Positions 25,125 to 59,237 of a stretch of 64,000 nucleotides of DNA are shown in pieces. The stretch is taken from the sequence record PP601403.1. One strand, 5' to 3'. Every line of letters starts with the position of its first letter. Position 1 is the stretch's first letter. Both the position numbers and the translations under genes were made by a program. The notes below the pieces were generated by a model, which searched no databases, was not told the DNA's origin, and was given only the letters and a program-made list of their open reading frames with translations.

Positions 25125-26549
25125 ATGAATATCGTTTATTATCTTGTCAGCTCATTAGTAAAAGATAAAAACGTAGGACTCTCTGGTGGTCATGGTTATA
25201 CCTACGATCAAACTAAAGAGAGTTCCCGTAAGCTGATAAAAGACACTCCATCCGGTTACGGTTACTTTGTGAATGGGAGTTATCAAAGTATCCCCGTTGA
25301 ACAAGTAATGATATTGAATGGTCGTGGTCTTCGACAGGAGACTGATGTAGATGCATTCTTAGCTCATTTGATTGATCTGCTGGAATATGCAGAACGAGAA
25401 AACGCTGAGAAAGTATTGATCATTCACGATAGTGTCAATGGTCAGAAACTCTTGGAAAATAATAAAGTATCTGAAAAGTTTGCTGATAATAACTATGTAA
25501 AGAGAGCGCGTGAACTTTACAGCAAACTTAAAGGTAAGATTATCTTTGACCTTGAGTATTACGCTAAAGGTGGGGAAGGTCCGAAACAAGCTCACAAACA
25601 GATGGAACTTGCTCAAGCAATGTTGGAACTACCCATTGGGGAACCAGTGAGTATTGATATTGTTACTGTAAAAGAGTATAAGAATCCTGAGAACGATTTT
25701 AACAAGGTGGTTACAGCGTCCCGTTGGTTCTTTAATACTGGTGACAAATCAGAGTTTTATAACATTGATGAAAACGGTTATCGTCGGTATGAGTTTGGTC
25801 GGATAGATCCTCAGAAAGCGTATTATGGTAAAGCTACTCCTGATGTCTTTTATTCAGCACTGTTTACCAAAACCCCGATTGTTATTTTAGATAAGTTGTA
25901 CGACTTCTGTAAAGCAGTTAAACCTAATCCGTTGAATCTGTTAGCAGCCGCTGATGTTGGAATGGTTAAGTCCAAGGAAATTAGCCGAGTAATCGATACT
26001 ATCCCTGGAACGTTGACTAAGAACGATCTGAAAGCATCTATGAGCATTGCTGGTGTCACAGATCCTGTATTGGTTAACTTCATTGATCCTCCTGGCTTGA
26101 GTTATCGAATTAAAGATTTCCAATATAAGTTGAAAATGCTTCATTCGTACTTTATGCGCAGGGATGAGAATAACCAATTCCAGAAACAACATTTCTTGGA
26201 TATCACTGATAAGTTCTTTGAACAAGATGCTAAAGGTAAATGGAAGATTCATTCTGACTTTACTAATAACACCTTGACTGTACCTATCATGATTGATGCT
26301 CCAGGTTGTGTGAAACAAGTTAAGATCAATTTGGCTATTCGTTATGACATTCCAGAACGTAACGCTTTGAACAGTATTATCAATAATAAGATAACTGATT
26401 TCAAAGTGTGGATTGGATTGGACTTTAACGATGACGCTGGTGTGATGTATTACACTGTGATTCAAACACCCGATTTCAACTTGGTACACTGTAACTCATG
26501 TGCTTCTCTTCGAGTGTACAACTTGAAAGAGTTGGGAAAAGCTAAGTAA
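25125..26549 (+). CDS. RNase H-like protein of phiKZ-like phages, possibly degenerate
   Basis: GGHGYTY strand and HDS motif resemble the jumbo-phage RNase HI fold; the first catalytic Asp appears absent. Confidence 0.45.
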   Translation: MNIVYYLVSSLVKDKNVGLSGGHGYTYDQTKESSRKLIKDTPSGYGYFVNGSYQSIPVEQVMILNGRGLRQETDVDAFLAHLIDLLEYAERENAEKVLIIHDSVNGQKLLENNKVSEKFADNNYVKRARELYSKLKGKIIFDLEYYAKGGEGPKQAHKQMELAQAMLELPIGEPVSIDIVTVKEYKNPENDFNKVVTASRWFFNTGDKSEFYNIDENGYRRYEFGRIDPQKAYYGKATPDVFYSALFTKTPIVILDKLYDFCKAVKPNPLNLLAAADVGMVKSKEISRVIDTIPGTLTKNDLKASMSIAGVTDPVLVNFIDPPGLSYRIKDFQYKLKMLHSYFMRRDENNQFQKQHFLDITDKFFEQDAKGKWKIHSDFTNNTLTVPIMIDAPGCVKQVKINLAIRYDIPERNALNSIINNKITDFKVWIGLDFNDDAGVMYYTVIQTPDFNLVHCNSCASLRVYNLKELGKAK

Positions 26550-40771: not shown

Positions 40772-43700
40772 TTAATTCATCCTCACCCCACTTTGTTGTT
40801 TAGCGAGACGATTGATACCTTCATTCAGAGTATCAACGGATGTGATCAACCTAGCCATTGCGGCTGTGTTGGCTTCATCGTTAACAGCCAGAGGTCCATC
40901 AGGTAACTTGAGTTCTACCGGAACTTCTTTGGTAGGTGTCTTCATTACATTAGACGGATTAACAGCAGGAGTATTAGTTGCTGTATTAACTGGTTGTTGC
41001 GGAGCAGCAATACTCGGTGGAGGAGTAGGTGCTTTAGGTTTACTAGCAGGTGATGCGGTCGGAACACTAGTTGGTGAAACAGGTTTATTAGAAACCTTAG
41101 CAGTATCTGCTGCGTTCATCAAACTGTTGATGTCTTCCTTAGCATCTGGGTTAACAGCTTTGTTACCATCAACGTGATCAGGTGGAACATTACTATCTGG
41201 AACAGAAGGTAACTGGGCTTGTTCATTACTAATTTGAACCGCTCCTTGTTCACCAGTATCAGGTACAGAGATATCTCCACGGTTAAGACGATCCAGGTAC
41301 TCTTGATAGTATTGTCTACGTTCATCGGAACCAGGAACAGGATTACCGCCATTGATACCACGCATAGCGGTTTCAAAATCACCTGTCTGGGCAATAGAAC
41401 GCATCGCTTTACTATTGAGTAAGAATCGTACAGCAGACTCAGCCATTACATTAGGATCTTCAGACACGATACGCGGATTAGATACAACATCAATCCCAGT
41501 TTCTTGTTTGAATTTCTCGTAGTTAGCTTTACCTGTTAACTGGAATAGTCCTCTACCACGATATAGCCAACCGTCTTCCGGTTTAGTGTTACCAAGTGTT
41601 GGACCTTTAGGAGCTTTACCGTAAACGTACATGGCACGTTCCGCAGGGGACAAAGCAGCAACTTTCTCAGCAGTAGCCATATCAGGAATATTTCTAAAGT
41701 ACTTCTTCAGAGTAGGAGCAGACCAGTTGGTATTCTCTACTGTAGCTGAATAGTTACCCGTTTCCTTCTTAGCCATCGCCAGTGCAAGAGCCAACATCTT
41801 CTTATCAGTTACACCTGCTTTTAACAAGTGGTTCAATAAGAGTTGTTCTCCTTGGGCAGGATCCATCTTGATCCCTTTGTCATCACCAGCTAACTTCTGG
41901 AACTCTGGATTAAAGGTATCTGACCAACCAAGGTTAACATTACCACCTTGCAGGTTGTAGTTAGTACCATATCCAAGACCATTGTTATTACGACCATCAG
42001 CAGTAAATGAATTACCAGTACCACCACCGTAAATACCAACATTACCAGCGGAGACATTACGGTTCTTACCATACACTTTATCAAACAGTGCATTGGTATT
42101 AGCCTGAACTTGACTATAGTTGACCTTACTTCCACTTAATTTCTCATCGTAAGTAAGTGAACGTTCATCTTCTAACTCAGGTTCTTTCAATCTTGCTTTA
42201 GTAGCTTTAGCATCCAAAGACTTAAGATACTTCTCAACTCTATCAGGCCAGCTACCAGAATTGGAATTTTCAAATGGTGAAACTTTTACATCCCACACTG
42301 ATACTTCTTCTTGTTGATAGATAACTCGAGTTTCTGACAAGAATCTAGCCAACTTAGCTTTATTAGTATCAGAGAGTGATCTCCAACCTTGCTTAGGTAG
42401 TTGATTACGAAGACGTTTCATTTCCTTAACGTATTGCTGTAATACAGGTAAGAAACGATTCTGGAACCACAGATGCCAGTTAGTCTCGCCGTTAGTTGTT
42501 TCAATTCTAAATTGAGCTTTAAACAGATTAAATACTCTAGTAGGATTACCACTAAAGACTGTTTCTGTTCCAAGCGTATTAATTAAATCTTCACAATAAC
42601 GTTCCAGTCTAAGTACAGCATCAACTCGCCAAGGCATATTGTCGATGTTACCATAAACACCTAAACGAACCATAGTAAAGGCATCGATTGCTGTATTAGC
42701 GTCTTTATGCAAATCAGAGATATCGATTTCTCTTACAGCTTGAGGTGTTTGGAACTTACGATCAACTTCTTCTTGAGCAAGTTTATTTACTCTGTCTCCA
42801 TAACTATTACTAAACCACCCTGCAAGTCCATCTGGGGTCTTTTCGTTGAGTACTCTGTTACGACGCTCTACATCTGTTTCTAGTTTGAACTCTTCTTCAG
42901 GAGTGGGGTATTTCTTACGAAGTTCTGACAGTAAAGAACTAACCAAGTTCTCAGTCATCACTCGATTAAGAATACCTTCCCTTGGATCTATCTGAACTTG
43001 TACTTCATAAGGGAATGGATCCAAAGTACCCATAGAGGTTCTTACACGTTCACAGAGTAGTGTAACTTCATAACTCTCTTTACGATCAAACTCGTTGATG
43101 TCACCATGTCTCCCGATAGATACCGCTACAGCATACAACAAGAACACGGGTTTAAAACGAGCATTAAACCAAGTGTGAACTTGATCAAATGGAACACTAT
43201 CTCCACCTTTAGCAAACTGTTGTAGAATCTGTGCAACAGGAGCACTTTGAGAGAAACTTGCTCTGTTATTAGCAATAGCTAAATGAGGAATTAAAGCTTG
43301 CTCCAACTTAGATACACGTTTAGCCAAATTACCGTCAATACTCTTTATACCGTACTGAGCATAACGAATACGACGTTGTAGTGAATCAGGAATCTCTTTA
43401 GCACTAACTCCACCGGTGCCATCAATGTAAGCTTGTGCTTCACGACGGTCAGTAAAGAAGGTTCCATCAGGAGCCCAGAATACACCCTTGTTCTCGATAA
43501 AGTCAGTAGCAGCTTTTGGTAACAGGAATTCCTTAGCGGTTTTCAAAGCAAGTGTAGGTAAGAAGAAATCAGAAGCTGTATCAACAACTTTCTCCATAGT
43601 AGTTAACTTTGGACCATTGTCGTCTTTACCATCTTCATACACATCTCCGTCAGTGGGCTCAGCTTCACTACCAAAAGCATCGGCTGCGTACATACCACCA

Positions 43701-46700
43701 CCTACCACAGCACCAGTACCTAACAAAGCAGCCAACATCTTACCTCGACCACCTAACTTACTAAGTACTCCACCGATCTTACCTCTCATCCCTCCTCTAC
43801 CGGCACCACCCAATGTGTCCCCTAAGCCACTTGCTGCTGTTTTAGCCATGGTGGCTTTAGTTAGAGCAGTGAACCCCCACTTCATTAATTTGAAGATAGG
43901 AGAAGCTGCTCCTAACACACCTGAGAACAACATCTTACCAATAGAAGCTAAGCGTTTTCCAGAGTTAACCAGAGAACCCATTATCAAACCACCTAAGGTT
44001 CCAATGGGATTCTTAATAAGACGCATGGCAAAATCACCCATACCTCCCATCAAGCTAAAGAGTTTACCGAAGATACCTTGCTTTTCGGTTTTCTCTCCCT
44101 CTTTAGGTTCTTTCATCCCTTCAGCAATATCGATGATAGAATCCTGAACCTTTTCTTGTTTCTCTGCTTTGGCTTGTCTGATCTTATCTTCCAAAGAGTT
44201 CAGTCTTAGCCCCTTAGCGATGGGCGAACCAATGGGGTCACTTTCACCGTCAAAGTTATCTGGAATATCAATACCGAACTTCTGGGAGAGTATGGCGTAA
44301 ATGCGATCTAAACGACGTTCCACACCACGGTTACTACTTTGTCCTGGTTTACCTGTTCCAGAAGCTTCTGTATCGCCTTGTGGACGATTGTAACCGAACT
44401 TCCCTAGGATGTTATCTAAACCTGATCTAGCGAGTCCTGCGGCCGTTCCAGCTAATCCTGAAGCAGCACTACCTACCGCTCTTACTTTCTGTCCAGTAGC
44501 TGTAATAAGACCTTGGTCAAATTCTACTTGGGAGATTACTTCGTTACCTTCACTATCGTAGACAGGACCATTAATCTCATTCCATCCCCAAATAGGTTTA
44601 ATGGAACCAGTGCTATCTTCGATAGAATACTCACCTTCTTTGAACTTGATCGCTCTCAGTCTAGGTGTTTTCTCACCCTTTACATATACGTCTTGTTGGT
44701 AAATGAGATTCTTACCCATTTCCATGACAGACTTAATACGTGTTAAGGGATCAATGAAGTTATAAGCACCAACTGCTGCATCTTTGATCTTAGTAATCCC
44801 TGATAGAACTACTGCTCGACCATCGGGACCAAAGATCTTACCACCTAACTCTTTAATAGTGATAGTGACTTTATTGGCAGCGTCAAATAACGGACCTTTG
44901 ATATCACGCCAAGTTTTTATCACGCGACGTTTTACAGCGTCGTAATAATCACCAGCTTTAAGTTTAGCAGAAGTTAATATCTTGTTTCCATTCTCATCGA
45001 GGATATCTTCATCGTCAGACGGTTCGTCACCTACACCTTCTGCATAATCCGTTTTACCCCAATGTTGAACTAACGCTCCTAGTGCAATACCACCTACGCC
45101 AGCGGCTGCTGCAAGAATAGGATTTTGGATAAAGTGTGAACTTACACCACCCAAGATAGAACCAAGAATCAATGGTTGATTTTGCATAACCATTTCAAAC
45201 CCTTTTCCGAGAATATTAGTCGGAAGGATTTTCTTGAGTCTATTTACTACATCAAAGTTATATCGATCAGCTTGACGTTCTTCAGTTTGCGATTTAGCTT
45301 GCTTACTAAAGAGTTTCCCGTCTTTTACAATACTGAGTAATTCAGTAAAGAGAAGATCCATATTGGACGTTGAAGTAGCAATCTTATCGATGTTTGAAAC
45401 AACTTCGCCAGTATGAGTGTCAAAGTAAGCCCGAGGGCCACTAGAACGCTCTGTATCAACTTTGGAAGTATTATCAATCAATCTACCAAGCTGTGCTGAC
45501 AAATCGCTTATAGAGCTGTTTAGCTCGTTAAACGTGTTGTTAGTTGAAGAAGACCCGGTTGGTGACTTAGGTACTATAAACCCACCTTTACCATCACTTA
45601 CTGGTTTCTTAGATGTATTATCAAACATCCCCTTTAACTGTGGGTTATTTGGGTTCTCCATGAACTGTCCCAATCTTTCATGGAAGATGTCCATGTTAAC
45701 TTTCTCTACCCCGGCTTCGGTGTAGATAACGCCCAGATCTCTAAGGAGTTGTTCATTACCGGTAGAACGTAGCATATCAATGCGTTCTGCTACATTGGGG
45801 AAAAGATCCTTCATGTTAGCAGCAGTAGCGGAGGCCACATTAAGACGTTCGTTACCTTCATTACTACGCATATCAGTCATGCGTTTGAGTTTATCAAACC
45901 CTTTAGCGGATTTAAACTCGGAAACGTCTTGATCGTTAAGACCAAAGTGACGTTTCATTACAGCGTGGATTTCTTTTTGATGAGAACCAGATACGTTAGG
46001 AATATCACCCAAATAGTAAAATGGATTAAACCCCTTTTCTTGGTCAACATCTTTAGCGATTTGCTGAGCTAATGCTTTTCTAGCACCAGGACTAAGTGTG
46101 CGTTCTGGATCTAGTCCATCAACCATTTCCAAAGCAGCTTGAGCATAGCGACTAAAGTCGCCATAAGGCATTAAATCAGCTTTAACAGAAATGCGTTTTT
46201 CTGAATCAGTTTGGAACTGACCACGCATATAGTTATAGCTTACACTTTCGATATTCTTTTCACCAGTACGAATACCTTCAGTACTAGTTAAGATCTTACT
46301 AAGTAAACCTGGGATAACTTCATTAAGAGTAATGTTATTGGTCTCTTTCCAGATACCTGGATTATTGAGATCTTTTACATTGCGCTTATTAAGTGTATAT
46401 TGAGTCCCACGAGATTTAGTAATCTCTGACATGAAGCTGTTAACAGAGGCTTTAGCTTTGTTGGTAGCCGCATTCTTAGCAACCCAAATAGCCTTTGGAA
46501 TTGGCTTCTTACCTGGAGGAAGTTGATCTAAGTAATCTTGATAATCAAGATACTGCATCTCATCCATAGCTTCGTAATCTTCAGCAAGGTAGTTTATTAA
46601 CCCAACGCCAGAAGTAGAAGCATAAGAAGCTTTATTACCAAAGTTAGTCAGTTTACCAAACATCTCTTGGAACTGTTTAGCTTCTTTGGGATTTTTAGCT

Positions 46701-47815
46701 GCTAACTTATTAATCCAATCTTTACCTTTACCACGTTCAAAGAAGTAAGGAATATTGGAAACAAACATACTACCTAGTTGTTTGCCAATTAGATCACCAA
46801 TCATCCCTTTGGACATCGGCATTCCATCTGACATATCCAACATGTCAGCAATTTGTTCTAAAGCAAAGTTACCGCCCTGATAACCTTCCTGTCTAGCTGA
46901 TTTACCAAACTTGTCTTTAATTAAACCAGTAAGACCACCTACTCGTTTACCTACTGTGTTAAAAAGCTTATTTCTCATAAACTCTTTAGATGCAGTAAAT
47001 GTAGAAGTCTTTTGGTAATCACTCATCATACTGGCTTTTTGAATCTTCTTCAATTCAGCAATTTCAGTATGGATTCCTTTCTCCATGAACTTATAGTACT
47101 TAACGTTAGAAACGTAAGTCTTAGCTAATAAAGAAAGTTTAGCCTGATCCATTCGAAGTTGAACGTTACGTTGGTAGTTAACCAAATCACGCATTCCAGA
47201 TTCGATGTTAACAAGCTGTCTATTACCAGATGAGATACTTGCAGTGATCATCCCGCCAACGTGAGCAGACATGGTATTAAGAGTTTCGCCTAATGCCGAG
47301 AACATTCCTTCTTGAGCTTCTAAGGAACGATCTAAAGCAGCAGCAACATCATACTCACTTGTCTCTTCAATAGACAAACCACCAGTTTCATAACTACCTA
47401 ATTTCTCCCAACTAGAAAAGTCTTTCTGGGAGAAATTCTCGAGTTCATTTGTAATTGAACTGGGCATTCTTTCGCCCATTTTCTTTGACAGATGACCCGC
47501 AATGCTTTGTAACGATTTAACAGAAGAAGCATTTTCTTCTTTAAATTCTGTTTTTAATTCGTCAAATCTACGACCAGCCCAGCTGACCCGATCTAACGCT
47601 GTGGAGAATGATTTAGGGAGAATAGTTCGAAGTGAACGCATTCTTGCTTCGCCACTTCCAACTGTTTCATCGACAATCCCAGAAAGGAATCCGGAGACCA
47701 TACCTCCGACAAAACCTTTCTTTGCATATGGATCCATATCGAAATCCATATCAAAGTCGATATCTCCACCAAAAGGATCATCATCCCAGTCTAGATCATA
47801 AGTATCACTTGCCAT
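40772..47815 (-). CDS. Large tail protein (tape-measure/tail-associated lysin, phiKZ gp181-like) with C-terminal GH19 peptidoglycan hydrolase
   Basis: About 2350 aa; KETG, DGWLYRGRGLFQLTGKANY, INGG GH19 motifs; P/T/A-rich tail; ATG at 47815. Confidence 0.8.
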   Translation of the reverse strand: MASDTYDLDWDDDPFGGDIDFDMDFDMDPYAKKGFVGGMVSGFLSGIVDETVGSGEARMRSLRTILPKSFSTALDRVSWAGRRFDELKTEFKEENASSVKSLQSIAGHLSKKMGERMPSSITNELENFSQKDFSSWEKLGSYETGGLSIEETSEYDVAAALDRSLEAQEGMFSALGETLNTMSAHVGGMITASISSGNRQLVNIESGMRDLVNYQRNVQLRMDQAKLSLLAKTYVSNVKYYKFMEKGIHTEIAELKKIQKASMMSDYQKTSTFTASKEFMRNKLFNTVGKRVGGLTGLIKDKFGKSARQEGYQGGNFALEQIADMLDMSDGMPMSKGMIGDLIGKQLGSMFVSNIPYFFERGKGKDWINKLAAKNPKEAKQFQEMFGKLTNFGNKASYASTSGVGLINYLAEDYEAMDEMQYLDYQDYLDQLPPGKKPIPKAIWVAKNAATNKAKASVNSFMSEITKSRGTQYTLNKRNVKDLNNPGIWKETNNITLNEVIPGLLSKILTSTEGIRTGEKNIESVSYNYMRGQFQTDSEKRISVKADLMPYGDFSRYAQAALEMVDGLDPERTLSPGARKALAQQIAKDVDQEKGFNPFYYLGDIPNVSGSHQKEIHAVMKRHFGLNDQDVSEFKSAKGFDKLKRMTDMRSNEGNERLNVASATAANMKDLFPNVAERIDMLRSTGNEQLLRDLGVIYTEAGVEKVNMDIFHERLGQFMENPNNPQLKGMFDNTSKKPVSDGKGGFIVPKSPTGSSSTNNTFNELNSSISDLSAQLGRLIDNTSKVDTERSSGPRAYFDTHTGEVVSNIDKIATSTSNMDLLFTELLSIVKDGKLFSKQAKSQTEERQADRYNFDVVNRLKKILPTNILGKGFEMVMQNQPLILGSILGGVSSHFIQNPILAAAAGVGGIALGALVQHWGKTDYAEGVGDEPSDDEDILDENGNKILTSAKLKAGDYYDAVKRRVIKTWRDIKGPLFDAANKVTITIKELGGKIFGPDGRAVVLSGITKIKDAAVGAYNFIDPLTRIKSVMEMGKNLIYQQDVYVKGEKTPRLRAIKFKEGEYSIEDSTGSIKPIWGWNEINGPVYDSEGNEVISQVEFDQGLITATGQKVRAVGSAASGLAGTAAGLARSGLDNILGKFGYNRPQGDTEASGTGKPGQSSNRGVERRLDRIYAILSQKFGIDIPDNFDGESDPIGSPIAKGLRLNSLEDKIRQAKAEKQEKVQDSIIDIAEGMKEPKEGEKTEKQGIFGKLFSLMGGMGDFAMRLIKNPIGTLGGLIMGSLVNSGKRLASIGKMLFSGVLGAASPIFKLMKWGFTALTKATMAKTAASGLGDTLGGAGRGGMRGKIGGVLSKLGGRGKMLAALLGTGAVVGGGMYAADAFGSEAEPTDGDVYEDGKDDNGPKLTTMEKVVDTASDFFLPTLALKTAKEFLLPKAATDFIENKGVFWAPDGTFFTDRREAQAYIDGTGGVSAKEIPDSLQRRIRYAQYGIKSIDGNLAKRVSKLEQALIPHLAIANNRASFSQSAPVAQILQQFAKGGDSVPFDQVHTWFNARFKPVFLLYAVAVSIGRHGDINEFDRKESYEVTLLCERVRTSMGTLDPFPYEVQVQIDPREGILNRVMTENLVSSLLSELRKKYPTPEEEFKLETDVERRNRVLNEKTPDGLAGWFSNSYGDRVNKLAQEEVDRKFQTPQAVREIDISDLHKDANTAIDAFTMVRLGVYGNIDNMPWRVDAVLRLERYCEDLINTLGTETVFSGNPTRVFNLFKAQFRIETTNGETNWHLWFQNRFLPVLQQYVKEMKRLRNQLPKQGWRSLSDTNKAKLARFLSETRVIYQQEEVSVWDVKVSPFENSNSGSWPDRVEKYLKSLDAKATKARLKEPELEDERSLTYDEKLSGSKVNYSQVQANTNALFDKVYGKNRNVSAGNVGIYGGGTGNSFTADGRNNNGLGYGTNYNLQGGNVNLGWSDTFNPEFQKLAGDDKGIKMDPAQGEQLLLNHLLKAGVTDKKMLALALAMAKKETGNYSATVENTNWSAPTLKKYFRNIPDMATAEKVAALSPAERAMYVYGKAPKGPTLGNTKPEDGWLYRGRGLFQLTGKANYEKFKQETGIDVVSNPRIVSEDPNVMAESAVRFLLNSKAMRSIAQTGDFETAMRGINGGNPVPGSDERRQYYQEYLDRLNRGDISVPDTGEQGAVQISNEQAQLPSVPDSNVPPDHVDGNKAVNPDAKEDINSLMNAADTAKVSNKPVSPTSVPTASPASKPKAPTPPPSIAAPQQPVNTATNTPAVNPSNVMKTPTKEVPVELKLPDGPLAVNDEANTAAMARLITSVDTLNEGINRLAKQQSGVRMN

Positions 47816-47840
47816 ACATTCCCTCACTTAGGAAATAGCG

Positions 47841-49292
47841 ATGAGTAGACAACCTACTAACTTTACGCTGCTTGATCCTAAAACGTTTCCAATAGAACTC
47901 ATGTCACCCGTGACAGTAGCAGATTCGTTTGAAGGTCAAACCACTAACTTGCACGAAGACGGACTCTACTCGACCAGGATCTTTGGTCGAGTAGGTACTG
48001 ATGAACGAGATAAAACTGAATCTTACATTAATACCCTATTACCTATTTTCAATCCCACGTATTTTAAAGCATTAGTGCAGTTAAAATCACTTTACTTAGA
48101 TATAGTAAAGGGTAAGACATATGCTGTATGGGATGAGACAGAACGTGATTTCATAAAATCTAACGTCCTGGAAGGCGATACAGGATTTGCGTTTTTTATG
48201 ACTCATTTTGGTGAATTAGATCCAAAACCAAATCAGTCTTTTAAACGGACTCAGAAGATCACGCTGGTTAATAATTTCCGTGATCGAGCTTTGAATAAAC
48301 ATATTCCAGTGATCCCAGCAGGTATCCGAGACATTGAAATCGGTCCTACCGGATTAGTTACTGAAAATGAGATTAACGATCTTTATCGTAAATTGATTTT
48401 CCGAACTAAATCACTAACTACCAAGAACCCTGATCCACTTGATCCAGTTTATGATAACATTCACTGGGGGATGCAGGAGTCTTTGAATAACATTGACCAA
48501 CATCTCTTTGAATTACAGGAAGGTAAACGAGGGTTCATGCAGCGTCGAATGAGTCGACGTTCTATCCACTCCGCAACTCGTAACGTAATCGTCTCTCGTA
48601 AAGTCTCTGTAGAGAATATGGACGATAATGCTACCGGCGATCCTAACTCTACTTTTATTGGGATGTACCAAGCACTACTTGGCTATAACCTAGTTGCTAC
48701 TCATGAACTTCTTAACGGTTTCTTATCTGAAGTATTTACTCCTGGATTGGATAAAGCTCGGTTAGTGGAACCTAAGAGTTTAGAGAGTGCTTACGTAGAT
48801 GTAGATCCTTACACAGTAGATAAGTTTACTTCTGCTGATGGAATTGGCAAACTCTTTAATGGATTTAGTGATCCTAACGTTCGTAACCGTCCTATTAAGG
48901 TAGCAGGTCATTACCTAGGTCTACTTTATGATGATGGTAAAAACGTTTGCTTAGTTCACGATGTAAATGATCTAGGTGAAGGAATGGATAAGAAGTACCT
49001 CCATCCTGTTACCTATATGCAATTCTTTTATATCCAGACCGTAAAAGCAATTGAAAAGAAGATGTTACAAATTACTCGTTACCCAATTACTGGGATAGGT
49101 TCTATTGTACCTACACGAGTGTTTGTTCTTCCAACTACAGCCACATCAGAATCAAGAACATTGATCGATATTGATGGTAGTAAATTGGATAGTTTTCACT
49201 TCTTTCCAGTGTGGACTAAAAATCCCAGTTTCTTTGATGGGATGAGTATTAGTAACATACGCTTAGCTGCTGCTGGTGGTGATTTTGACGGT
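47841..49292 (+). CDS. rpoC: Virion RNA polymerase beta-prime subunit, exon 1 (phiKZ gp180-like)
   Basis: IPVIPAGIR, NDLYRKLIFR, GKRGFM, TRYP and GGDFDG match RpoC regions; the final catalytic Asp is supplied by exon 2. Confidence 0.9.
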
Positions 49293-49550
49293 ATTTCAGC
49301 TTGCCGCTTTTAGTAGTAATACTAATCGAATAAGTGCGGAATGAAGCAAGGAACCTCTCCATTTAGAGATAACTTGAACCGAAGGCTTATTGTAAATAGT
49401 AAGTCAGGGGCAGAGCGTAGATAGTGAACCTCTTTCATTAAAGAGAATATAATCTATCCAAGAGGCCGCACCATCCTACTGGGATGAAAACGTACGCCGA
49501 TACCCGGAGTGATCTGGGAGTGAAGATAAAAAGCTTCACATTAACATTTG
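49293..49550 (+). mobile_element. Group I self-splicing intron, 258 nt, no internal ORF
   Basis: Exon ends in U and intron ends in G. P2 tagta-GTAA-tacta; P3 GTGCGG(49334-39)/CCGCAC(49466-71); P4 CAAG/CTTG; P7 G(A)GCGTA(49413-19)/TACGCC(49493-98); P8 catcc/ggatg; P9 cccgga-GTGA-tctggg. Splicing restores DFDGD. Confidence 0.9.
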
Positions 49551-49718
49551 GACCAACTATCCGCCAACAGTATTCAAGCTAAAGATTCAGTAGATGAAAT
49601 TGAAACTTTGTTTGGTAAACGTATATTCTATATTTCTGGAGCAGGTGACTTTCTATATGACCCTGTACAGGAACCACACGCATTCCTTTTACGTTCATTG
49701 ACCAATGGATTATCGTAA
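49551..49718 (+). CDS. rpoC: Virion RNA polymerase beta-prime subunit, exon 2 (55 aa, not in ORF track)
   Basis: DQLSANSIQAKDSVDEIETLFGKRIFYISGAGDFLYDPVQEPHAFLLRSLTNGLS*; spliced product is 539 aa; the stop overlaps the beta ATG (TAATG). Confidence 0.85.
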   Translation, partial: DQLSANSIQAKDSVDEIETLFGKRIFYISGAGDFLYDPVQEPHAFLLRSLTNGLS

Positions 49719-52700
49719 TGCAAGAACATCCAGTAAACTTTGACGAACTTAGCGGACTAGAGGGTTTGTTGTACTCTCAGTTCATTAAACTACACGGCAC
49801 GCGAGAACGTGCTAATGATGTAGTGAACCCACGATATCAAGTAGTCGGGGATATCATGTTACCTCGTAACAGTCTCATTCATTACCAGGGAAATATTCCT
49901 GGTGAATTGGGACCTAGTAACACCGCTGCTTTTATTAGCAACTACGACAAACGTATTAACATCTTTTTTAATGTTAATTACGAAACACCTCTGGGAACTA
50001 CCAAGATTGTTCCTATTCAGTTGACTAAGTTGATCAAGCAATATGAAGGCGGACATTACCTTTATACTCGTGCTCGTCAATACCAAACTGTAATTCACAA
50101 AGAAGGTGAATTGCTAGTTAACAACTTAGCTATTGGTAAGATCCCTGTTCAGTATCGTAGACAAACTGTTTTCACTCCATTCCAACGTTCTTATAATGAA
50201 CTCTATACATTAATGGAGTCAGTGAATGAGTTTAGCCAATACGATATTCATCAGTTTGTGGAGTTTAAACTTCCTCGGTCGTTCCCCTCTTATAAAACGT
50301 TAGAACTTAAATTTGAAAAGTATAAACGTTTCTTTAATAATGAAGGTGTTATTGAGAAGTATGAGAAGGAAGCTTTAAAAGAGTTCCAAGCTGAAGAATC
50401 TTTCTGGTTATTAGATCTATTTGGTATTCTGATTGGTTTTGAGAATAAACAATACAGTTTGTTTAATAGATTGAATGATCGAGCTAGAAGTCAACTGGAA
50501 TTGATCTTTACTTATAACGGGGTGTGTTGGATTGCTAATCTTCAAACACTAATCAATTTGATTGGGTACGATGATAAACCAGAAGACACTTCTCCCCGTC
50601 CTATTAAGTTTAACTACTTCAAGCGTTTCTACCTTGCTTTGATTTCTCTGGTGAGTCCGCTTTCTGAAGAAGTTGTGGAAGAGAGTTATGAGCAACCAGA
50701 AGAAACCACCAAAGAAAAGGTGGTGGCAGATCGATCGGAAAAAGGAGGGAGAGGATCTGGACGAGAGTCTGAAGAAAAGTCCCCTCTGGTACCTAATACT
50801 ACTCCTGGTGGCTTGGCTGATCTTTATGCCAGCAGTAAGGGAACTACTCCTGCGGTGTCTGATACCTCAGGAACAAAAGGAGAGAAGGTTACTGAAGGAA
50901 CACTTCCTGGGAGTTCCGAATCCGAGAACAACTCAGTTCCTACTGAAACCTCTGAGAAATCCCCGGAAGAAGAATGGGGTGCTGACATAGATGATAGTGT
51001 CTTTGAACGCGCCAGCATCGAACAAGCCACTATTGTTAACTCTGAAGAAGCTTATTCGCCAGTTAGTACGATCAATCGTATTCTGGAACGTAAAGCAGCA
51101 AGAGGTCAATTAACAACCAAAGAGAAAGAGTATTACACAAACGCAAGTGTCTCTTATAAAGACATTGAGTTTGGTGGTCATTTACTCTCAGAGATTGTTG
51201 ATATCAAACCTGAAGACTTGGTGATGAAACCTAAAACGTTTGCACCTAAGTCAGAAGCTGTTACAGATGAGTCTGTATTGCGTTCTAGAAGCATGGAACT
51301 TACTAAGGGATATGTAGAGCAGTTCCTTGAACGAGATATCATGGGGTCTATTCTAGCTGTTCAGAACGGCGGTACTGCTTTACTTGATCTGAATCGTGAA
51401 ACCATTATCACCGCTGATTCCAAGTACGATGTTTACAAGATGAAACTCCAACCTGTGGATAATGGTAACCAGTCTACCAGACAGTTCCGTTTACCTAAGG
51501 TGGCTTCTGACGGTAGTTTTACTATTAACGGGGTTAAGTCATATGCTCAGTTAGTACGTATGGATCTTCCGGTTAGAAAGATCAATCCAGTTAAGGTTGC
51601 TATTAGTTCTTATTACGATAAGAAACTGATGATCGAACGTTCTGCTTATAAAGTAGACGATTACAATCATTGGCTTAAGACTAATATCATTCAGAAGAGT
51701 TATGAAGACAAATCTATTACAGTTAAATTAGGTTCATTTAAATCTGAACTTAAAGAAGTGTGTTGGTATTATTCAGTACTAGCTTCTCGCTTTAAAGAGA
51801 TTACTGTTGGTGGTTTGGAATTTAACTTTGATACTGAATCTATTTTGGTGAAACATCCTAAATGGAAGAAGTATTGTAAAGCTGATAGTTGGGTCATTGG
51901 TGATGAACACGGGGTTCCTGTACTAATCGATAATACTGGCTTGGTAATGATCGATGGTGTAGAGAAAGGTTACATTGAAGAGATCCTTCGGTTACCTATG
52001 GCTAAAGCTCCAGTCCCCACTGCAACTGCGAACATTAATGGTTATAAGTTCCCTGTAGTAGTAGTTCTTGCTTACTGGATTGGTTTTAGTGAACTAGTGA
52101 AACGTCTCAAACCCACTCATCGTGTTGTTGAGCCAGGTACTCGTCCTATGCTTAATGCTAACGAGTATATTGTTCAGTTTGCTGATGAACGTTTGATTCT
52201 TGATCGTCGAGATGGGCTGAGTACTCTGATATTCTCGGGACTGAGAAAGTTAGATGGGTTAGCCAACTTCTCCAAAGCTCAATTGGATGATCCTAACGTA
52301 TGGTTCAGTTTAATTAATGATAGTCGTGTTAAACCATCTCACTTTAAAGAGATGGATTTGATTTACGATATGTTCATTGATCCTATCACTGCTCGTGAAT
52401 TGGAACGTCGTGGTTATCCTCTCATTATGGATAAGTTGATTATCCGTGCCGTAGAGATGCTTCTTAATAACGAAGCAGAACACGAAGTAGAGATTGCTGA
52501 ACAGCGTTTGGTTGGATTCGAGAGATTCCCTGGTCACGTATATCGAGAACTGGTTAAGTCTACTAGACAGTTTAGGAACAAACCTAATACTGGTAAGAAG
52601 ACCTTTGACTTGAACCCAGAAGCTATCATGATGAATATCCTGACTGATAGCAGTATGCAGCCAGTTGAAGAAGTCAACCCGGCTCACCAGATCAAGCAAC

Positions 52701-54085
52701 AGGAAGAAGTTACCTTTGGTGGCACCTTTGGTCGAAGTGATCAAGCAATGGTACGCCGTACTCGTGGTCAATTACCAAGTTACGCAGGGATTATTTCTGA
52801 AGCTGGTAAGGACTCGGGTAAAGTAGGATTTATCTCTTATCTAACTTCTGATGCCAAGATTGTTGACTACGCTGGTAACGTGGATGTAACCCAAGAAACC
52901 ACCAATGCAGGTCGTGGATCAGTAACTGCTAACTTACTTTATGGTACAACGCGCGACGATTCGAAGCGAAGCTTGTTCTCAGGTGTTCAGCTAAGTCAAT
53001 GGATGGCTACTGATAGTTACGTTGCTAACCCTATTAGAACTCCTTCTGATAGCGTAGTAGCTTATCGTAACTCAGAACTATATTGCTCTTATGCTAAAGA
53101 CGCCGGAACAGTGGCTAATATTTCACCAGACGGGATGACTGTTAAGTATGACAATGGCAGTGAAGAGAAATTCCCACTTGGCTATGAAGTAGGTAAAGGT
53201 GCTGGTGAGTATCACAAACATCTTAAAATCACCGATATGAAAGTTGGTGATAAAGTTGATAAGGGTGATGTTCTTGCTTGGGATGATTGTTTCTACACTC
53301 GGGATTTAACTAATCCAAAACGGATTGTTATTAAGCTTGGGACAATGGCACGTATTGCATTGGTAGAAGATCAATTCACATTTGAAGACTCCATCGGTAT
53401 TACCCAGAAGTATGCCGATTTGAATACCACTCCTTACTTGAAAAACAATGTGTTTAATATCGGTTATGAACAAGCGATTAAACTCTATGTTAAGGTAGGC
53501 GACAAGGTTGAGTACGATCAAGTACTGGCTGATGTAATGGATCCTTCTTCTGCTATGTTCGAGGAGGAAGGTGTTAATTCCATTGCTGGTTTGGATCGTC
53601 TTGGCATTAAACAAATCAAGGCTAAACAAGCTGGTGTGATTACCAAGATCGATGTTATTTATAATGGCGATCTTGATACAGCTGAAGAGTCTTTGAAAGC
53701 GTTTATCCAAGAACAAGATAAACTACGTGCCAAGAAAGCTAAGTTCCGAGAACTCGCTGCTGATAATGGTAACGTAGGTGGTAACACCTCAGTAGGTAAA
53801 TCTAAGGTTTATCCTAACACTGCTTCTGTTACTATTACCATTGAGAGCAAACTCACTACCACCACTGCTGATAAGTTCGTAGCAGGTAACCAGATGAAAG
53901 GTACTGTAGGTTTCATTTATCCAGATCCTATCTATACTGTCGATGGTCGGGAAGTTGATGTTAAGTTCTCTTTGAAGTCTTTGCTTAACCGAATGGTATT
54001 GAGTCTTCGTGATAAACTGGTAGCTAATGAATTGAACCATGTTTACACTAGTCGTATGATGAAGAAATATGGGAGATATGAATAA
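49718..54085 (+). CDS. rpoB: Virion RNA polymerase beta subunit, large part (phiKZ gp178-like)
   Basis: DDSKRSLFSG..LSQ, FEDSIGI, ADKFVAGNQMKG, KSLLNRM parallel RpoB DDANRALMG, FEDS, GDKMAGRHGNKG, SRM. Confidence 0.9.
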   Translation: MQEHPVNFDELSGLEGLLYSQFIKLHGTRERANDVVNPRYQVVGDIMLPRNSLIHYQGNIPGELGPSNTAAFISNYDKRINIFFNVNYETPLGTTKIVPIQLTKLIKQYEGGHYLYTRARQYQTVIHKEGELLVNNLAIGKIPVQYRRQTVFTPFQRSYNELYTLMESVNEFSQYDIHQFVEFKLPRSFPSYKTLELKFEKYKRFFNNEGVIEKYEKEALKEFQAEESFWLLDLFGILIGFENKQYSLFNRLNDRARSQLELIFTYNGVCWIANLQTLINLIGYDDKPEDTSPRPIKFNYFKRFYLALISLVSPLSEEVVEESYEQPEETTKEKVVADRSEKGGRGSGRESEEKSPLVPNTTPGGLADLYASSKGTTPAVSDTSGTKGEKVTEGTLPGSSESENNSVPTETSEKSPEEEWGADIDDSVFERASIEQATIVNSEEAYSPVSTINRILERKAARGQLTTKEKEYYTNASVSYKDIEFGGHLLSEIVDIKPEDLVMKPKTFAPKSEAVTDESVLRSRSMELTKGYVEQFLERDIMGSILAVQNGGTALLDLNRETIITADSKYDVYKMKLQPVDNGNQSTRQFRLPKVASDGSFTINGVKSYAQLVRMDLPVRKINPVKVAISSYYDKKLMIERSAYKVDDYNHWLKTNIIQKSYEDKSITVKLGSFKSELKEVCWYYSVLASRFKEITVGGLEFNFDTESILVKHPKWKKYCKADSWVIGDEHGVPVLIDNTGLVMIDGVEKGYIEEILRLPMAKAPVPTATANINGYKFPVVVVLAYWIGFSELVKRLKPTHRVVEPGTRPMLNANEYIVQFADERLILDRRDGLSTLIFSGLRKLDGLANFSKAQLDDPNVWFSLINDSRVKPSHFKEMDLIYDMFIDPITARELERRGYPLIMDKLIIRAVEMLLNNEAEHEVEIAEQRLVGFERFPGHVYRELVKSTRQFRNKPNTGKKTFDLNPEAIMMNILTDSSMQPVEEVNPAHQIKQQEEVTFGGTFGRSDQAMVRRTRGQLPSYAGIISEAGKDSGKVGFISYLTSDAKIVDYAGNVDVTQETTNAGRGSVTANLLYGTTRDDSKRSLFSGVQLSQWMATDSYVANPIRTPSDSVVAYRNSELYCSYAKDAGTVANISPDGMTVKYDNGSEEKFPLGYEVGKGAGEYHKHLKITDMKVGDKVDKGDVLAWDDCFYTRDLTNPKRIVIKLGTMARIALVEDQFTFEDSIGITQKYADLNTTPYLKNNVFNIGYEQAIKLYVKVGDKVEYDQVLADVMDPSSAMFEEEGVNSIAGLDRLGIKQIKAKQAGVITKIDVIYNGDLDTAEESLKAFIQEQDKLRAKKAKFRELAADNGNVGGNTSVGKSKVYPNTASVTITIESKLTTTTADKFVAGNQMKGTVGFIYPDPIYTVDGREVDVKFSLKSLLNRMVLSLRDKLVANELNHVYTSRMMKKYGRYE

Positions 54086-57643: not shown

Positions 57644-58386
57644 TCGAATTCGATAAGCTGAAGAAAGACACAGGGCGGATTAATTCCGCCCTTAAAGTCA
57701 TGCCTGATAATACGGTCGTTGCTCTTAAGAAGATGACGTGTTACATTCCTAAGCGTTTCGAACAATCTGGTTTGGCTGAAGTTGGTGATTCGGTAAATAC
57801 AATTATGGCAGTTGGGGTAGTGGTTGATGACTACTATTCTTGCTTTGGTTCTCTGACACGGTTTAGTATGAAGCCTGGTGATACTTCTGAGGAAGTTATT
57901 AAAGGTGAACGTTACTATGTCATGCATTTTGAACCGGGTGATATTGTTATTGAAAACATCTTTGTTCCGCAGGATGCTAACCTGATCTATTACTTCTATT
58001 TGGAATTCATCAAATACGCTCGTTATCCATGGTATATGGATGAAAGCGTACTATTGAATATCTTTGATGAAAGTTCTTATTTTGCAGGTAAGAAAGTAGG
58101 TAGTTCTGCTCAAGTGCTCAGAGTGTTGTTTTCGTTAACAATGCGAGATCCTGTCAACTTGGATATTCCGTTTCGTTATTCCCCACAGTTTAAAGATCTC
58201 TCCGTGAAACCTCGTATCATCGGTATTAACAACCCAGGTCAACTACTTAATAGTACATTTAGTAGATTGTCTTCGGGTTATATGTCTGATAACATTGTCA
58301 GTGGTATTCTTAACCCAGATACACAGATGACAACGTTGGAAGAGGTGATCCGTGGTCTTCCTGAAGAGTATGGAGAGTTACAATGA
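57640..58386 (+). CDS. Conserved virion/head-assembly protein
   Basis: 248 aa; overlaps both neighbours. Confidence 0.6.
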   Translation: MIEFDKLKKDTGRINSALKVMPDNTVVALKKMTCYIPKRFEQSGLAEVGDSVNTIMAVGVVVDDYYSCFGSLTRFSMKPGDTSEEVIKGERYYVMHFEPGDIVIENIFVPQDANLIYYFYLEFIKYARYPWYMDESVLLNIFDESSYFAGKKVGSSAQVLRVLFSLTMRDPVNLDIPFRYSPQFKDLSVKPRIIGINNPGQLLNSTFSRLSSGYMSDNIVSGILNPDTQMTTLEEVIRGLPEEYGELQ

Positions 58387-59237
58387 GTGAAATTAGCTTT
58401 GGGAATATCGTTCTAGCTAATAGTGGTAAGAAAGGTATTCTCAAACCAAACTCGGATGGTATTTACCGTTTGAATGCCGGTGGGTTCAATATTCCTAACC
58501 ACGCCGGTATTGTTTATCCTGCTAACAAATACATTCGTGAACAAATGGAAGCTAATAGCGATTTGAACCGTCGTGTTAGCATGGGTTATTGCTTGATGGA
58601 ACAAGAACATCCGCAACCTTTCTTTTATGTAGAGGAGAATGGTGTTCGTTATCGTAAAGCAATGACTTCTGTACTGGAATGGATTAATCGTCTTCGTAGT
58701 TATGATCACGATAATGTCTGTGGACTTATCAGTAAGATTATCTTCCGTCCTGAGAATCCTAACAATCTTTCAGCTCCTATTTGGAATGAGATCGACTGTA
58801 AACCATTTGGTGCTAAAGGTGAATGGTTCCGTGAATCTCTGGAAACTCCGCAGCACAACACTGCTGTAAGTATCCGTACGCAGATCTCCCCTTTCAAACC
58901 TGGTGAAACTCGCAAGGAAGTTGAGTTCTGGACGGGCTATGACGCAGTTAGCGAACCTGGGTTCTTACACGCTAATAAGCATCTCTCAGCTGGTTGCGAG
59001 TCCATGCTTTCTGACTTTAATCTGGGGATGGATAACGTCATTAAGTTCAAAGCCTCTGATGTTATTGAACAGATTGATAATCAACTTGCTCTTGCTGCTA
59101 ATAGTGACTTTGAACTCCAACGTGTAGGTGGTATGGAATCACTTAACATGATGAAGGACATGGTAGAAGCTGTTAAGCGCAGTTACAAGTCTGGTGACAC
59201 AACTCGTGTTGGTGTTTCCTTTAGCGACGTATTCTAA
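58383..59237 (+). CDS. Prohead protease (phiKZ gp175-like)
   Basis: EQEHPQP (His), NTAVSIR (Ser), YDAVSEPG; C-terminal AGCE and GGME putative autocleavage sites. Confidence 0.78.
   Translation: MSEISFGNIVLANSGKKGILKPNSDGIYRLNAGGFNIPNHAGIVYPANKYIREQMEANSDLNRRVSMGYCLMEQEHPQPFFYVEENGVRYRKAMTSVLEWINRLRSYDHDNVCGLISKIIFRPENPNNLSAPIWNEIDCKPFGAKGEWFRESLETPQHNTAVSIRTQISPFKPGETRKEVEFWTGYDAVSEPGFLHANKHLSAGCESMLSDFNLGMDNVIKFKASDVIEQIDNQLALAANSDFELQRVGGMESLNMMKDMVEAVKRSYKSGDTTRVGVSFSDVF

Follow-up and report, generated by a model that had tools for sequence, protein, structure and literature searches.

The stretch of DNA analysed here (64,000 nt; the window) belongs to the genome of Aeromonas phage ACP1 (PP601403.1), which it matches at 100% identity over the same coordinates. 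ACP1 is a 236-kb Ferozepurvirus whose isolation host is Aeromonas caviae. Genomes of relatives from the sister genus Chaoshanvirus have a chimallin gene, which places the ACP1 lineage among the phiKZ-like, nucleus-forming phages (PMC10321303). In the region of interest, a 490-aa open reading frame (ORF) at 47841-49313 ends ...AAAGGDFDG-ISACRF*, a small ORF at 49548-49718 starts 234 nt past it, and a 1455-aa ORF follows that matches the virion RNA polymerase (RNAP) beta family PHROG 3148. The 490-aa ORF is beta′-like (see below), and its gene is syntenic with this virion beta gene and with a gene for a 2351-aa lysin. The GenBank record of ACP1 gives the first two ORFs as separate “hypothetical protein” entries, ACP1_0054 and ACP1_0055, the latter with an annotated start at TTG 49548. 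The PS1 and CF8 records also hold two CDSs, as in ACP1, and in the ZPAH34 and AhC3_1 records only the first piece is annotated. The window contains no second gene with a DFDGD motif; the sole near match is a DYDG at 12349, where the next residue is not Asp.

The first two ORFs can be read as the parts of a single interrupted gene:

47841..49292, plus strand: exon 1 of a beta′-like (virion-type) RNAP N-terminal subunit gene; 484 codons, ending GGT GAT TTT GAC GGT (GDFDG)
49293..49550, plus strand: predicted ORF-less group I (IA-like) intron; 258 nt, first base A, last base G (omegaG)
49551..49718, plus strand: exon 2; 55 codons and a stop, the first codon, GAC, being the third Asp of DFDGD

Exon 2 opens GAC CAA CTA at 49551 and its stop codon lies at 49716-49718, so that exons of 1452 and 168 nt yield 539 codons plus the stop. 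Excision of 49293-49550 joins GAC GGT to GAC CAA in frame and gives DFDG|DQ, as in the intron-less protein. In a profile search against PHROG 2986, which has 539 positions, the 490-aa ORF covers positions 6-487 (E=3e-177) and the translation of 49551-49715 covers 488-539 (E=3e-8), abutting position 487 with neither overlap nor gap. Two phages, pAEv1810 and AVP1, have an exon 1 that is 96.1% identical to that of ACP1 and carry the gene as one 1620-nt CDS (539 aa) that reads GGDFDG|DQLSANS, GGA being directly followed by GAT. PS1 and PS2 (96.9% identical), ZPAH34 (85%), CF8 (85%) and AhC3_1 (79%) carry the insert at the same position as ACP1. The original prediction had been made from the letters of ACP1; its reading of the 490-aa ORF as ending GGDFDG-ISACRF* is what the sequence says, its 539-aa DFDGD product agrees both with the contiguous profile match at 487/488 and with the uninterrupted genes of pAEv1810 and AVP1, the alignment to intron-less homologs that it had proposed as a check continues across DFDG|DQLSANS, and GenBank does list the gene as two fragments, where it had expected automated annotation to report a truncated subunit.

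Exon 2 has a constant length of 168 nt in seven phages, including all five intron-bearing Aeromonas phages, and its omega is 0.07-0.10 where dS is measurable. This is strong purifying selection, from which we conclude that exon 2 is translated, its reading frame being the continuation of that of exon 1. The exon-1 protein matches the AR9 nvRNAP beta′ chains 7S00_d and 7S01_d (E~6e-7), with a weak second stretch in which AAGGDFDG is aligned to LSGDYDG of AR9 beta′ (7S00/7S01), and homologs in OBP, N1M2 and SXP01 carry the annotation virion-associated beta′. By homology, then, the split gene is that of a beta′-like RNAP N-terminal subunit, and a role for this subunit in the ACP1 virion would be expected from its relatives.

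We next consider the insert itself. No endonuclease ORF lies within the 258 nt, in keeping with the original prediction, and the longest stretch free of stops reaches 43 codons, both strands considered. Compared with its shuffles, the sense strand has the better fold (z = -2.2), which is not so for the antisense strand (z = -0.9). RNAalifold, run on the introns of five Aeromonas phages with no prior structure supplied, recovered P1, P2, P3, P4/P5, P6a, P7.1, P7.2, P8, P9 and P9.1, with 20 compensatory pairs. The P7 pseudoknot, G(A)GCGUA/UACGCC, was added after this prediction, and the register of P6 was set with the help of the phiR1-37 and CB457 sequences. The elements of the resulting structure are as follows, with compensatory changes in P2, P9 and P9.1 counted in the five Aeromonas phages, and class-wide referring to the wider class of related introns described below:

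49289..49306, plus strand: P1, CGGU+A (49289-49293) with the guide UGCCG (49302-49306); from RNAalifold
49307..49328, plus strand: P2 hairpin with a GUAA (GNRA) loop; 4 of 7 pairs compensatory
49334..49339 with 49466-49471, plus strand: P3, GUGCGG/CCGCAC; 6 of 6 pairs covary class-wide, 98.5% paired
49347-49350 with 49373-49376, plus strand: P4, CAAG/CUUG; 4 of 4 pairs covary class-wide, 98.5% paired
49353-49358 with 49365-49370, plus strand: P5, enclosed by P4, with A-rich J4/5 and J5/4
49379-49380 with 49407-49408, plus strand: P6, CC/GG; 2 of 2 pairs covary class-wide, 99% paired
49384-49391 with 49398-49405, plus strand: P6a, inside P6; 8 of 8 pairs covary class-wide
49413..49419 with 49493-49498, plus strand: P7, G(A)GCGUA/UACGCC, forming a pseudoknot with P3; A49414 bulged
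49420-49424 with 49454-49458, plus strand: P7.1, between P7 and P3′; 4 of 5 pairs compensatory
49430-49435 with 49440-49445, plus strand: P7.2 (P7.1a), nested in P7.1; 4 of 5 pairs compensatory
49472-49477 with 49481-49486, plus strand: P8 hairpin; 5 of 5 pairs covary class-wide
49487-49492, plus strand: J8/7, AAAACG; class-wide six nucleotides, AAAA(G/U/C)(A/G)
49503-49508 with 49513-49518, plus strand: P9, with a GUGA loop; 4 of 6 pairs compensatory
49520-49525 with 49534-49539, plus strand: P9.1; 2 of 6 pairs compensatory

The helices follow one another in the group I order P3-P4-P5-P6-P7-P3′-P8-P7′, with the P3/P7 pseudoknot. A wobble pair in P1, U49292.G49303, marks the 5′ splice site, and the P1 pairing is invariant in seven sequences at the DFDG|D site. 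The adenines of J4/5 and J5/4 are conserved in 96-101 of 105 class sequences, J6/7 reads (C/G)GCA across the class, and the G49415-C49497 pair in P7 is the predicted guanosine-binding site. Extra helices P7.1/P7.2 (or P7.1a) between P7 and P3′ are a feature of subgroup IA, and here a P7.1 with a second helix nested in it occupies that place and covaries; this extension (49420..49458) also carries a conserved internal loop, GAAUAUAAU. We consider the architecture to be IA-like. The intron deviates from the canonical form in having a P4 of only 4 bp, a P6 of only 2 bp and a J3/4 of 7 nt against the usual 3, and P10, judged by eye, is weak at 2-4 bp.

Comparative data support this structure at increasing evolutionary depth. 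In the five Aeromonas phages, with P7 included, 98.6% of cells are paired and 21 of 73 pairs show compensatory change, against 7.9 +/- 1.9 in shuffled controls and 3-4 when partners are slid. Within these phages P3, P4 and P6 are invariant and P7 and P8 vary at one pair each, and because the core varies so little among them we widened the search to distant relatives. BLASTN with the intron alone gave weaker matches in other phages, in gaps that carry no annotation: Raoultella VB_ZK_P1, Klebsiella phiKp_32, Listeria LIS04 and Enterocloster phages, as well as, near gyrA, Yersinia phiR1-37 (between g328 and gyrA g329) and Bacillus BpSp (before gyrA). For ten sequences, drawn from four gene contexts, pairing in the core reaches 94.7%, and compensatory change is seen at 27 of 51 pairs, against 4-8 in slid controls. 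MAFFT put the Enterocloster sequence one column off in P3/P4, and alignment was therefore made with a covariance model. A covariance model of the class core without P7, R1, found a single copy in the window at 176.9 bits (next best 13 bits, filters off) and gave 105 full-length matches on fetched loci.

The class alignment that follows from these matches, A5, was fitted to R1 for all helices but P7. With P7 added, pairing across its 98 distinct sequences stands at 94.6%, compensatory change is seen in 42 of the 46 core pairs, and the covariation score is 0.70, against 0.19 for shuffles and at most 0.09 for slid partners. P7, which is absent from R1, and whose 5′ strand was fixed in part by the retrieval pattern (together with the P7.1/P7.2 loop) while its 3′ strand was absent from that pattern, is yet 94.5% paired in the class alignment, with compensatory change in 4 of 6 pairs. 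Its first pair is AU in 56 sequences and GC in 35; at the second pair, that of the guanosine site, 88 of 98 sequences have G-C, and the bulged nucleotide is C (65) or A (40). Among distant members P3 changes from GUGCGG/CCGCAC to UUGGGG/CCCCGA (six aligned pairs, the fifth a U.G wobble), P4 from CAAG/CUUG to CGGG/UCCG, CUGG/UCAG or CGUA/UGCG, and P6 from CC/GG to UG/CA; their P7, A(C)GCAUA/UAUGCU, lies between the canonical A(C)GACUA/UAGUCU and the ACP1 form. The helices and signals that had been named from one sequence (P1, P2, P3, P4, P8, P9, J8/7 and the terminal G) are thus all present in the comparative structure, and the proposal that P7 covaries while keeping its bulge and its G-C site holds across the class.

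These introns escape the standard model. RF00028, searched at its gathering score (50 bits), matches nothing in the window, and in the 451 nt of 49200-49650 nothing even at E<=10; a permissive Rfam scan returned an isrI match on the opposite strand with E=9.2, which is noise. The original prediction had named this search as a check and had counted the lack of a hit against itself. We regard the result as uninformative, since a single Rfam group I alignment is known to miss subtype diversity (Nawrocki et al., PMC6125680), and we attribute the silence of RF00028 to the narrowness of the model and not to the absence of an intron. RF00028 does find canonical introns, at 59-106 bits, on contigs that carry class members, some of them only a few hundred bases away; on L008, L009, L013, L019 and L037 it matched the canonical introns and never the class members. 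A fixed-spacing motif search for further copies in the window gave chance-level matches only. The signature pattern of P7-P7.1-P7.2, in turn, occurs on more than 111 IMG/VR contigs among the matches listed. The class is a common kind of phage intron undetected by Rfam, and we count this as new here. Because RF00028 misses so common a class, phage and virome intron surveys that rely on it undercount. Split genes have been left unexplained in this way, among them gyrA of phiR1-37 and BpSp and the beta′ gene of the Raoultella and Klebsiella phages.

The DFDG|D site has been used more than once. The class member of the Raoultella and Klebsiella phages is preceded by GAT TTT GAC GGT, and the exon resumes with GAT ACC ATG. 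The host gene there belongs to PHROG 2987, a paralogous beta′-like family that aligns to PHROG 2986 only around DFDGD; we had considered the Raoultella gene as an ortholog of ACP1 exon 1 and rejected this, as BLASTP finds no similarity and PHROGs place the gene in 2987. The same gene also holds a canonical RF00028 intron about 60 nt upstream of the class member. On three IMG/VR contigs (L103, L154 and L181) a class member directly follows DFDG, the upstream exons being very short in all three, and in L103 and L181 the exon resumes DEMW..., indicating a more canonical NADFDGDEM gene. A loose scan of IMG/VR for P1 plus DFDG returned mostly chance matches, with an intron core in only 2 of 83. The repeated use of DFDG|D in paralogous beta′ genes we also count as new.

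We tentatively suggest, as a possibility we would not favour at present, that the class is a large phage-specific group I subclass that spreads without endonucleases and has repeatedly colonised DFDG|D in at least three beta′-like families, often beside other introns. The material cited for a subclass comprises over 100 IMG/VR contigs and the unannotated members in phiR1-37, BpSp and the Listeria, Enterocloster, Raoultella and Klebsiella phages. If the conserved GAY GGU is chosen by the guide UGCCG itself, as reverse splicing might do, or by a shared trans-acting nuclease, then RNAP active-site codons would be a hotspot, and such a hotspot would mean intron traffic and competition among nucleus-forming phages.

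The history of the ACP1 intron at the DNA level is recorded in its flanks. Across genera the intron is 79-89% identical, against 68-74% for exon 1 and 62-77% for exon 2. Within Ferozepurvirus there are 34 positions at which both intron-plus phages differ from both intron-minus phages, and many of them fall in one tract:

49261..49577, plus strand: clustered exon tract around the insertion, -31..+26 in exon coordinates, with 12 synonymous intron-plus/minus differences

Twelve of the 34 fixed differences lie within -31..+26, where 1.2 would be expected (binomial P = 1.2e-9; 0 of 100,000 permutations), and all twelve are synonymous, including a switch of Ser codon between AGT/AGC and TCA. At positions close to the junction (GAC GGT | GAC CAA ... 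AAC AGY) the intron-plus version is that of the Chaoshanvirus intron-plus alleles; farther from the junction it does not always match them. The tract keeps the U needed for P1, where intron-less alleles read GGA. This synonymous cluster points to a recent gain or loss of the intron at the DNA level. It is the trace expected from co-conversion during homing, or from the reverse event, and could alternatively reflect loss of the intron by recombination with an intron-less allele.

Present in some Ferozepurvirus and absent in others, the intron appears to be mobile now or to have been so recently. Because it has no endonuclease, its transfer probably proceeds by recombination in mixed infections, possibly begun by a free-standing endonuclease acting in trans. 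Trans-acting, free-standing endonucleases are a known route for ORF-less introns (PMC3984707), and the close relative Z90 is reported to have four free-standing HNH genes (PMC12837969); in ACP1, Pfam finds no nuclease domain among nine ORFs neighbouring the gene, one of which is a Peptidase_S80. Presence and absence between 96%-identical phages, together with the junction tract, make these phages a natural pair for studying how introns without endonucleases move. Work on PhiPA3 has shown that introns in jumbo-phage RNAP genes can decide the outcome of co-infection (PMC11620839).

Taken together, we hold it to be very probable that 49293-49550 is a self-splicing, IA-like group I intron without a homing-endonuclease gene, interrupting a virion-type beta′ gene between the Gly and the last Asp of the Mg-binding DFDGD. 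Splicing would proceed as follows. In the late pre-mRNA, CGGU at the exon end is predicted to pair with the guide UGCCG to form P1, with the U.G pair at the splice site; the A-rich J4/5 and the P3-P8 / P4-P6 core would dock P1; a free guanosine, bound at G49415-C49497 of P7, would attack after U49292; and G49550 would then take the guanosine site, so that the freed 3′-OH of exon 1 could attack after G49550. Ligation of GAC GGU to GAC CAA would give the 539-aa subunit with DFDGD intact and a predicted junction-spanning peptide ...AAAGGDFDGDQLSANSIQAK. If splicing failed, only the 490-aa protein, lacking the third Asp, would be expected. Those papers on these Aeromonas phages that we checked make no mention of an intron, and the phiR1-37 RNA-seq paper is silent on gyrA splicing.

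Several other kinds of insert were considered and rejected. An intein would need an open frame, and the exon-1 frame meets a TAG after 6 codons and further stops beyond. Group II introns have domains D1-D6 with a catalytic triad in D5, lengths of about 600 nt or more, and GUGYG...AY boundaries; the insert matches neither RF00029 nor D1-D4, has no D5/D6, and is 258 nt long with the boundaries AUUUC...UUUG, and the scan used on ACP1 does detect the group II intron of AR9. Translational bypass is set aside as well, 258 nt being far beyond known hops.

Of the explanations that deserve fuller weighing, one accepts the group I origin and questions autonomy: the insert may be a group I intron by descent that depends in vivo on a maturase- or chaperone-like protein, or that splices inefficiently and so limits the virion polymerase. 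The short P4 and P6, the long J3/4, and the extra internal loop conserved in the class would fit such dependence, but the core is complete and strongly conserved and the sequence indicates no cofactor. Similar-sized ORF-less phage introns generally self-splice in vitro, which also speaks against a need for protein. Many group I introns do require protein factors (PMC3984707), and we judge this account unlikely; self-splicing is the most likely behaviour.

The remaining two explanations would have the insert stay in the message. According to one, the gene is naturally split and chains of 490 and 56 aa (the second from TTG 49548) assemble, like other split RNAP subunits of jumbo phages. GenBank's two CDSs accord with this, as does the existence of jumbo-phage beta and beta′ as separate polypeptides (PMC7598289), and purifying selection on exon 2 would be predicted here too. 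The break, however, would fall within the Mg-binding loop, so that one of the chains would carry two of the Asp and the other chain the third, and by eye we see no Shine-Dalgarno sequence before 49548. Moreover, a split gene explains neither why a spacer of 258 nt should show 21 compensatory pairs and boundaries of group I type nor its clean presence or absence between 96%-identical phages, and we consider it very improbable. More improbable still is a decayed mobile element that has left the beta′ gene a pseudogene in five phages. The first ORF does stop 6 codons into the insert, and Rfam gives no match; yet the frame of exon 2 and its 168-nt length are kept in all five intron-bearing phages with omega ~0.1, and the RNA structure is held by compensatory change. 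In addition, early transcription in phiKZ-like phages requires this packaged core enzyme (PMC7598289, PMC11620839), and the isolates are viable.

A spliced beta′ gene has consequences for annotation. An essential polymerase subunit is now deposited in truncated form, either accompanied by a tiny hypothetical protein or with exon 2 omitted, where the correct product would be one subunit of 539-541 aa with its catalytic loop intact. Five deposited Aeromonas jumbo-phage genomes (the ACP1, PS1, PS2, ZPAH34, CF8, AhC3_1 group) need re-annotation, and this correction, too, we count as new.

The closest known counterpart is AR9 gp144, the virion RNAP beta′ N-terminal subunit, in which the same kind of gene is split at the same motif and annotated as a three-exon join; the locus is treated in PMC12350094 (Fig. 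5A), and we also read it directly from sequence. Its exon 2 ends ...LKALGGDYD and its exon 3 starts GDTVSL, so that the split is DYD|GD, 3 nt upstream of the ACP1 DFDG|D, and a group I split of this motif one codon upstream is therefore already on record. Like that of ACP1, the AR9 intron has a U before the 5′ splice site and a terminal G. It differs in being about 1.8 kb long with a homing endonuclease, gp145, where ACP1 has 258 nt and no ORF, and in its canonical core (GUUCAACGACUA ... AAGAUAUAGUC), which RF00028 scores at 86.7 bits and in which R1 finds no match at E<=0.001. AR9 gp144 additionally has a group II intron, and invasion of virion beta′ N-terminal genes by introns of group I as well as of group II has been described (2025 NAR, PMC12350094).

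A second counterpart comes from among the nucleus-forming phages. In PhiPA3 a putative group I intron, gp210, interrupts the virion RNAP beta gene gp211/209 at conserved Asp codons of the catalytic region (PMC11620839). The PhiPA3 intron is in beta and not beta′, its site follows two Asp that correspond to E. coli RpoB D675, and it encodes an HNH nicking endonuclease that acts in phage-phage competition, whereas that of ACP1 has no coding content. In ACP1 the interrupted PhiPA3 / phiKZ gp178 gene has as its homolog the neighbouring 1455-aa gene (PHROG 3148). The ORF-less phage introns of “collaborative homing” (PMC3984707) resemble that of ACP1 in being small, in occupying a conserved site of an essential gene, in their patchy distribution and in the altered tract at their junction.

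With group I introns in such RNAP genes known from AR9 and PhiPA3, the novelty of the ACP1 intron is modest, and the view of what group I introns are is unchanged. As regards architecture, a comparison may be drawn with the classical IA2 phage introns (T4 td, nrdB and nrdD; Twort orf142), which we take to share with ACP1 the general topology, a P7.1/P7.2 before P3′, GNRA-capped peripheral helices and a location in genes of nucleic-acid metabolism. The classical IA2 P7 is A(C)GACUA/UAGUCU, against G(A)GCGUA/UACGCC or A(C)GCAUA/UAUGCU in the class described here, and this class presumably differs from the classical introns also in nesting P7.2 inside P7.1 and in the sequences of P4 and J6/7.

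The exon downstream of the ACP1 intron (exon 2; called ORF at 49548-49718) is annotated inconsistently in databases among intron-bearing phages. It is entered as a separate, TTG-initiated hypothetical protein of 56 aa in ACP1 and PS1 (PS1_0228) and as a separate, shorter hypothetical protein in CF8 (CF8_0226), and carries no annotation at the ZPAH34 and AhC3_1 loci. The window contains one D-[FY]-D-G match besides DFDG, GTSDYDGRPES at 12349-12360 (+) inside the ORF at 12235-13479; this has no following Asp and no RNA polymerase context, and is probably coincidental. The neighborhood of the ACP1 intron mirrors phiKZ gp175-gp181, and includes:

40772-47827, minus strand, ORF of 2351 aa that relatives' records label "putative endolysin"
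49718-54085, plus strand, 1455-aa virion beta gene (PHROG 3148)
58383-59237, plus strand, prohead protease (Peptidase_S80)

The virion beta gene is uninterrupted in ACP1, in contrast to its PhiPA3 homolog, which is the gene interrupted by the PhiPA3 intron.

Introns of ACP1-like structure, all missed by the canonical Rfam group I model RF00028, also occur at other loci. Unannotated members, scored with R1, our covariance model of the class core built without P7, lie between g328 and g329 of Yersinia phage phiR1-37 (fetched locus L010, about 1935-2240; 157 bits) and before gyrA gp106 of Bacillus phage BpSp (L012, about 2400-2790; 130 bits). Parts of a DNA gyrase A gene stand on either side of each, which suggests that gyrA of both phages is a spliced gene entered as separate CDSs. 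Listeria phage LIS04 has a further member (L011, 2468-2617; 121.7 bits) directly 3' of a CDS annotated "endonuclease," flanked by CDSs annotated as intein/Hint fragments and with a terminase gene downstream. Its P2 is seemingly missing and its P8 nearly absent; it may be related to the ORF-less form but carry an endonuclease.

Class-wide, the internal loop GAAUAUAAU, which separates P7.2 from the 3' strand of P7.1, is almost invariant (49446-49453 in the window), and the P9.1 loop GAUAAAAA is conserved; both are candidates for class-specific tertiary contacts.

Members of the class also occur close to other introns. In a beta'-like gene from the paralogous PHROG 2987 family, Raoultella phage VB_ZK_P1 and Klebsiella phage phiKp_32 each carry two introns about 60 nt apart:

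L008 1607-2304 (PV662128, about 25825-26522), intron pair of VB_ZK_P1
L009 1607-2304, intron pair of phiKp_32, coordinates as in L008

The upstream intron of each pair, at 1607-1933, is canonical (RF00028, 63.8 and 58.6 bits in L008 and L009, respectively), and the downstream intron, beginning at 1994 immediately after GATTTTGACGGT, is of the ACP1 class. Unrelated "hypothetical" CDSs are called across both introns in the two records. In several IMG/VR contigs, two to three introns follow one another inside about 1-2 kb; the series consists of two class members or has class members beside canonical RF00028 introns:

L019, 1672-2593
L037, 4634-6653
L064, L016, L024, L074, L094 and L027

The virion beta' gene of AR9 is also interrupted by introns:

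L208 (NC_031039 116500-123500), minus strand, AR9 virion beta' gene

Here a canonical group I intron splits beta' at DYD|GD, 3 nt from the ACP1 insertion site, and a group II intron splits it further upstream; adjacent phosphodiester bonds in the same beta' motif are therefore targets of two structurally different classes of group I intron, one in AR9 and the other in ACP1.
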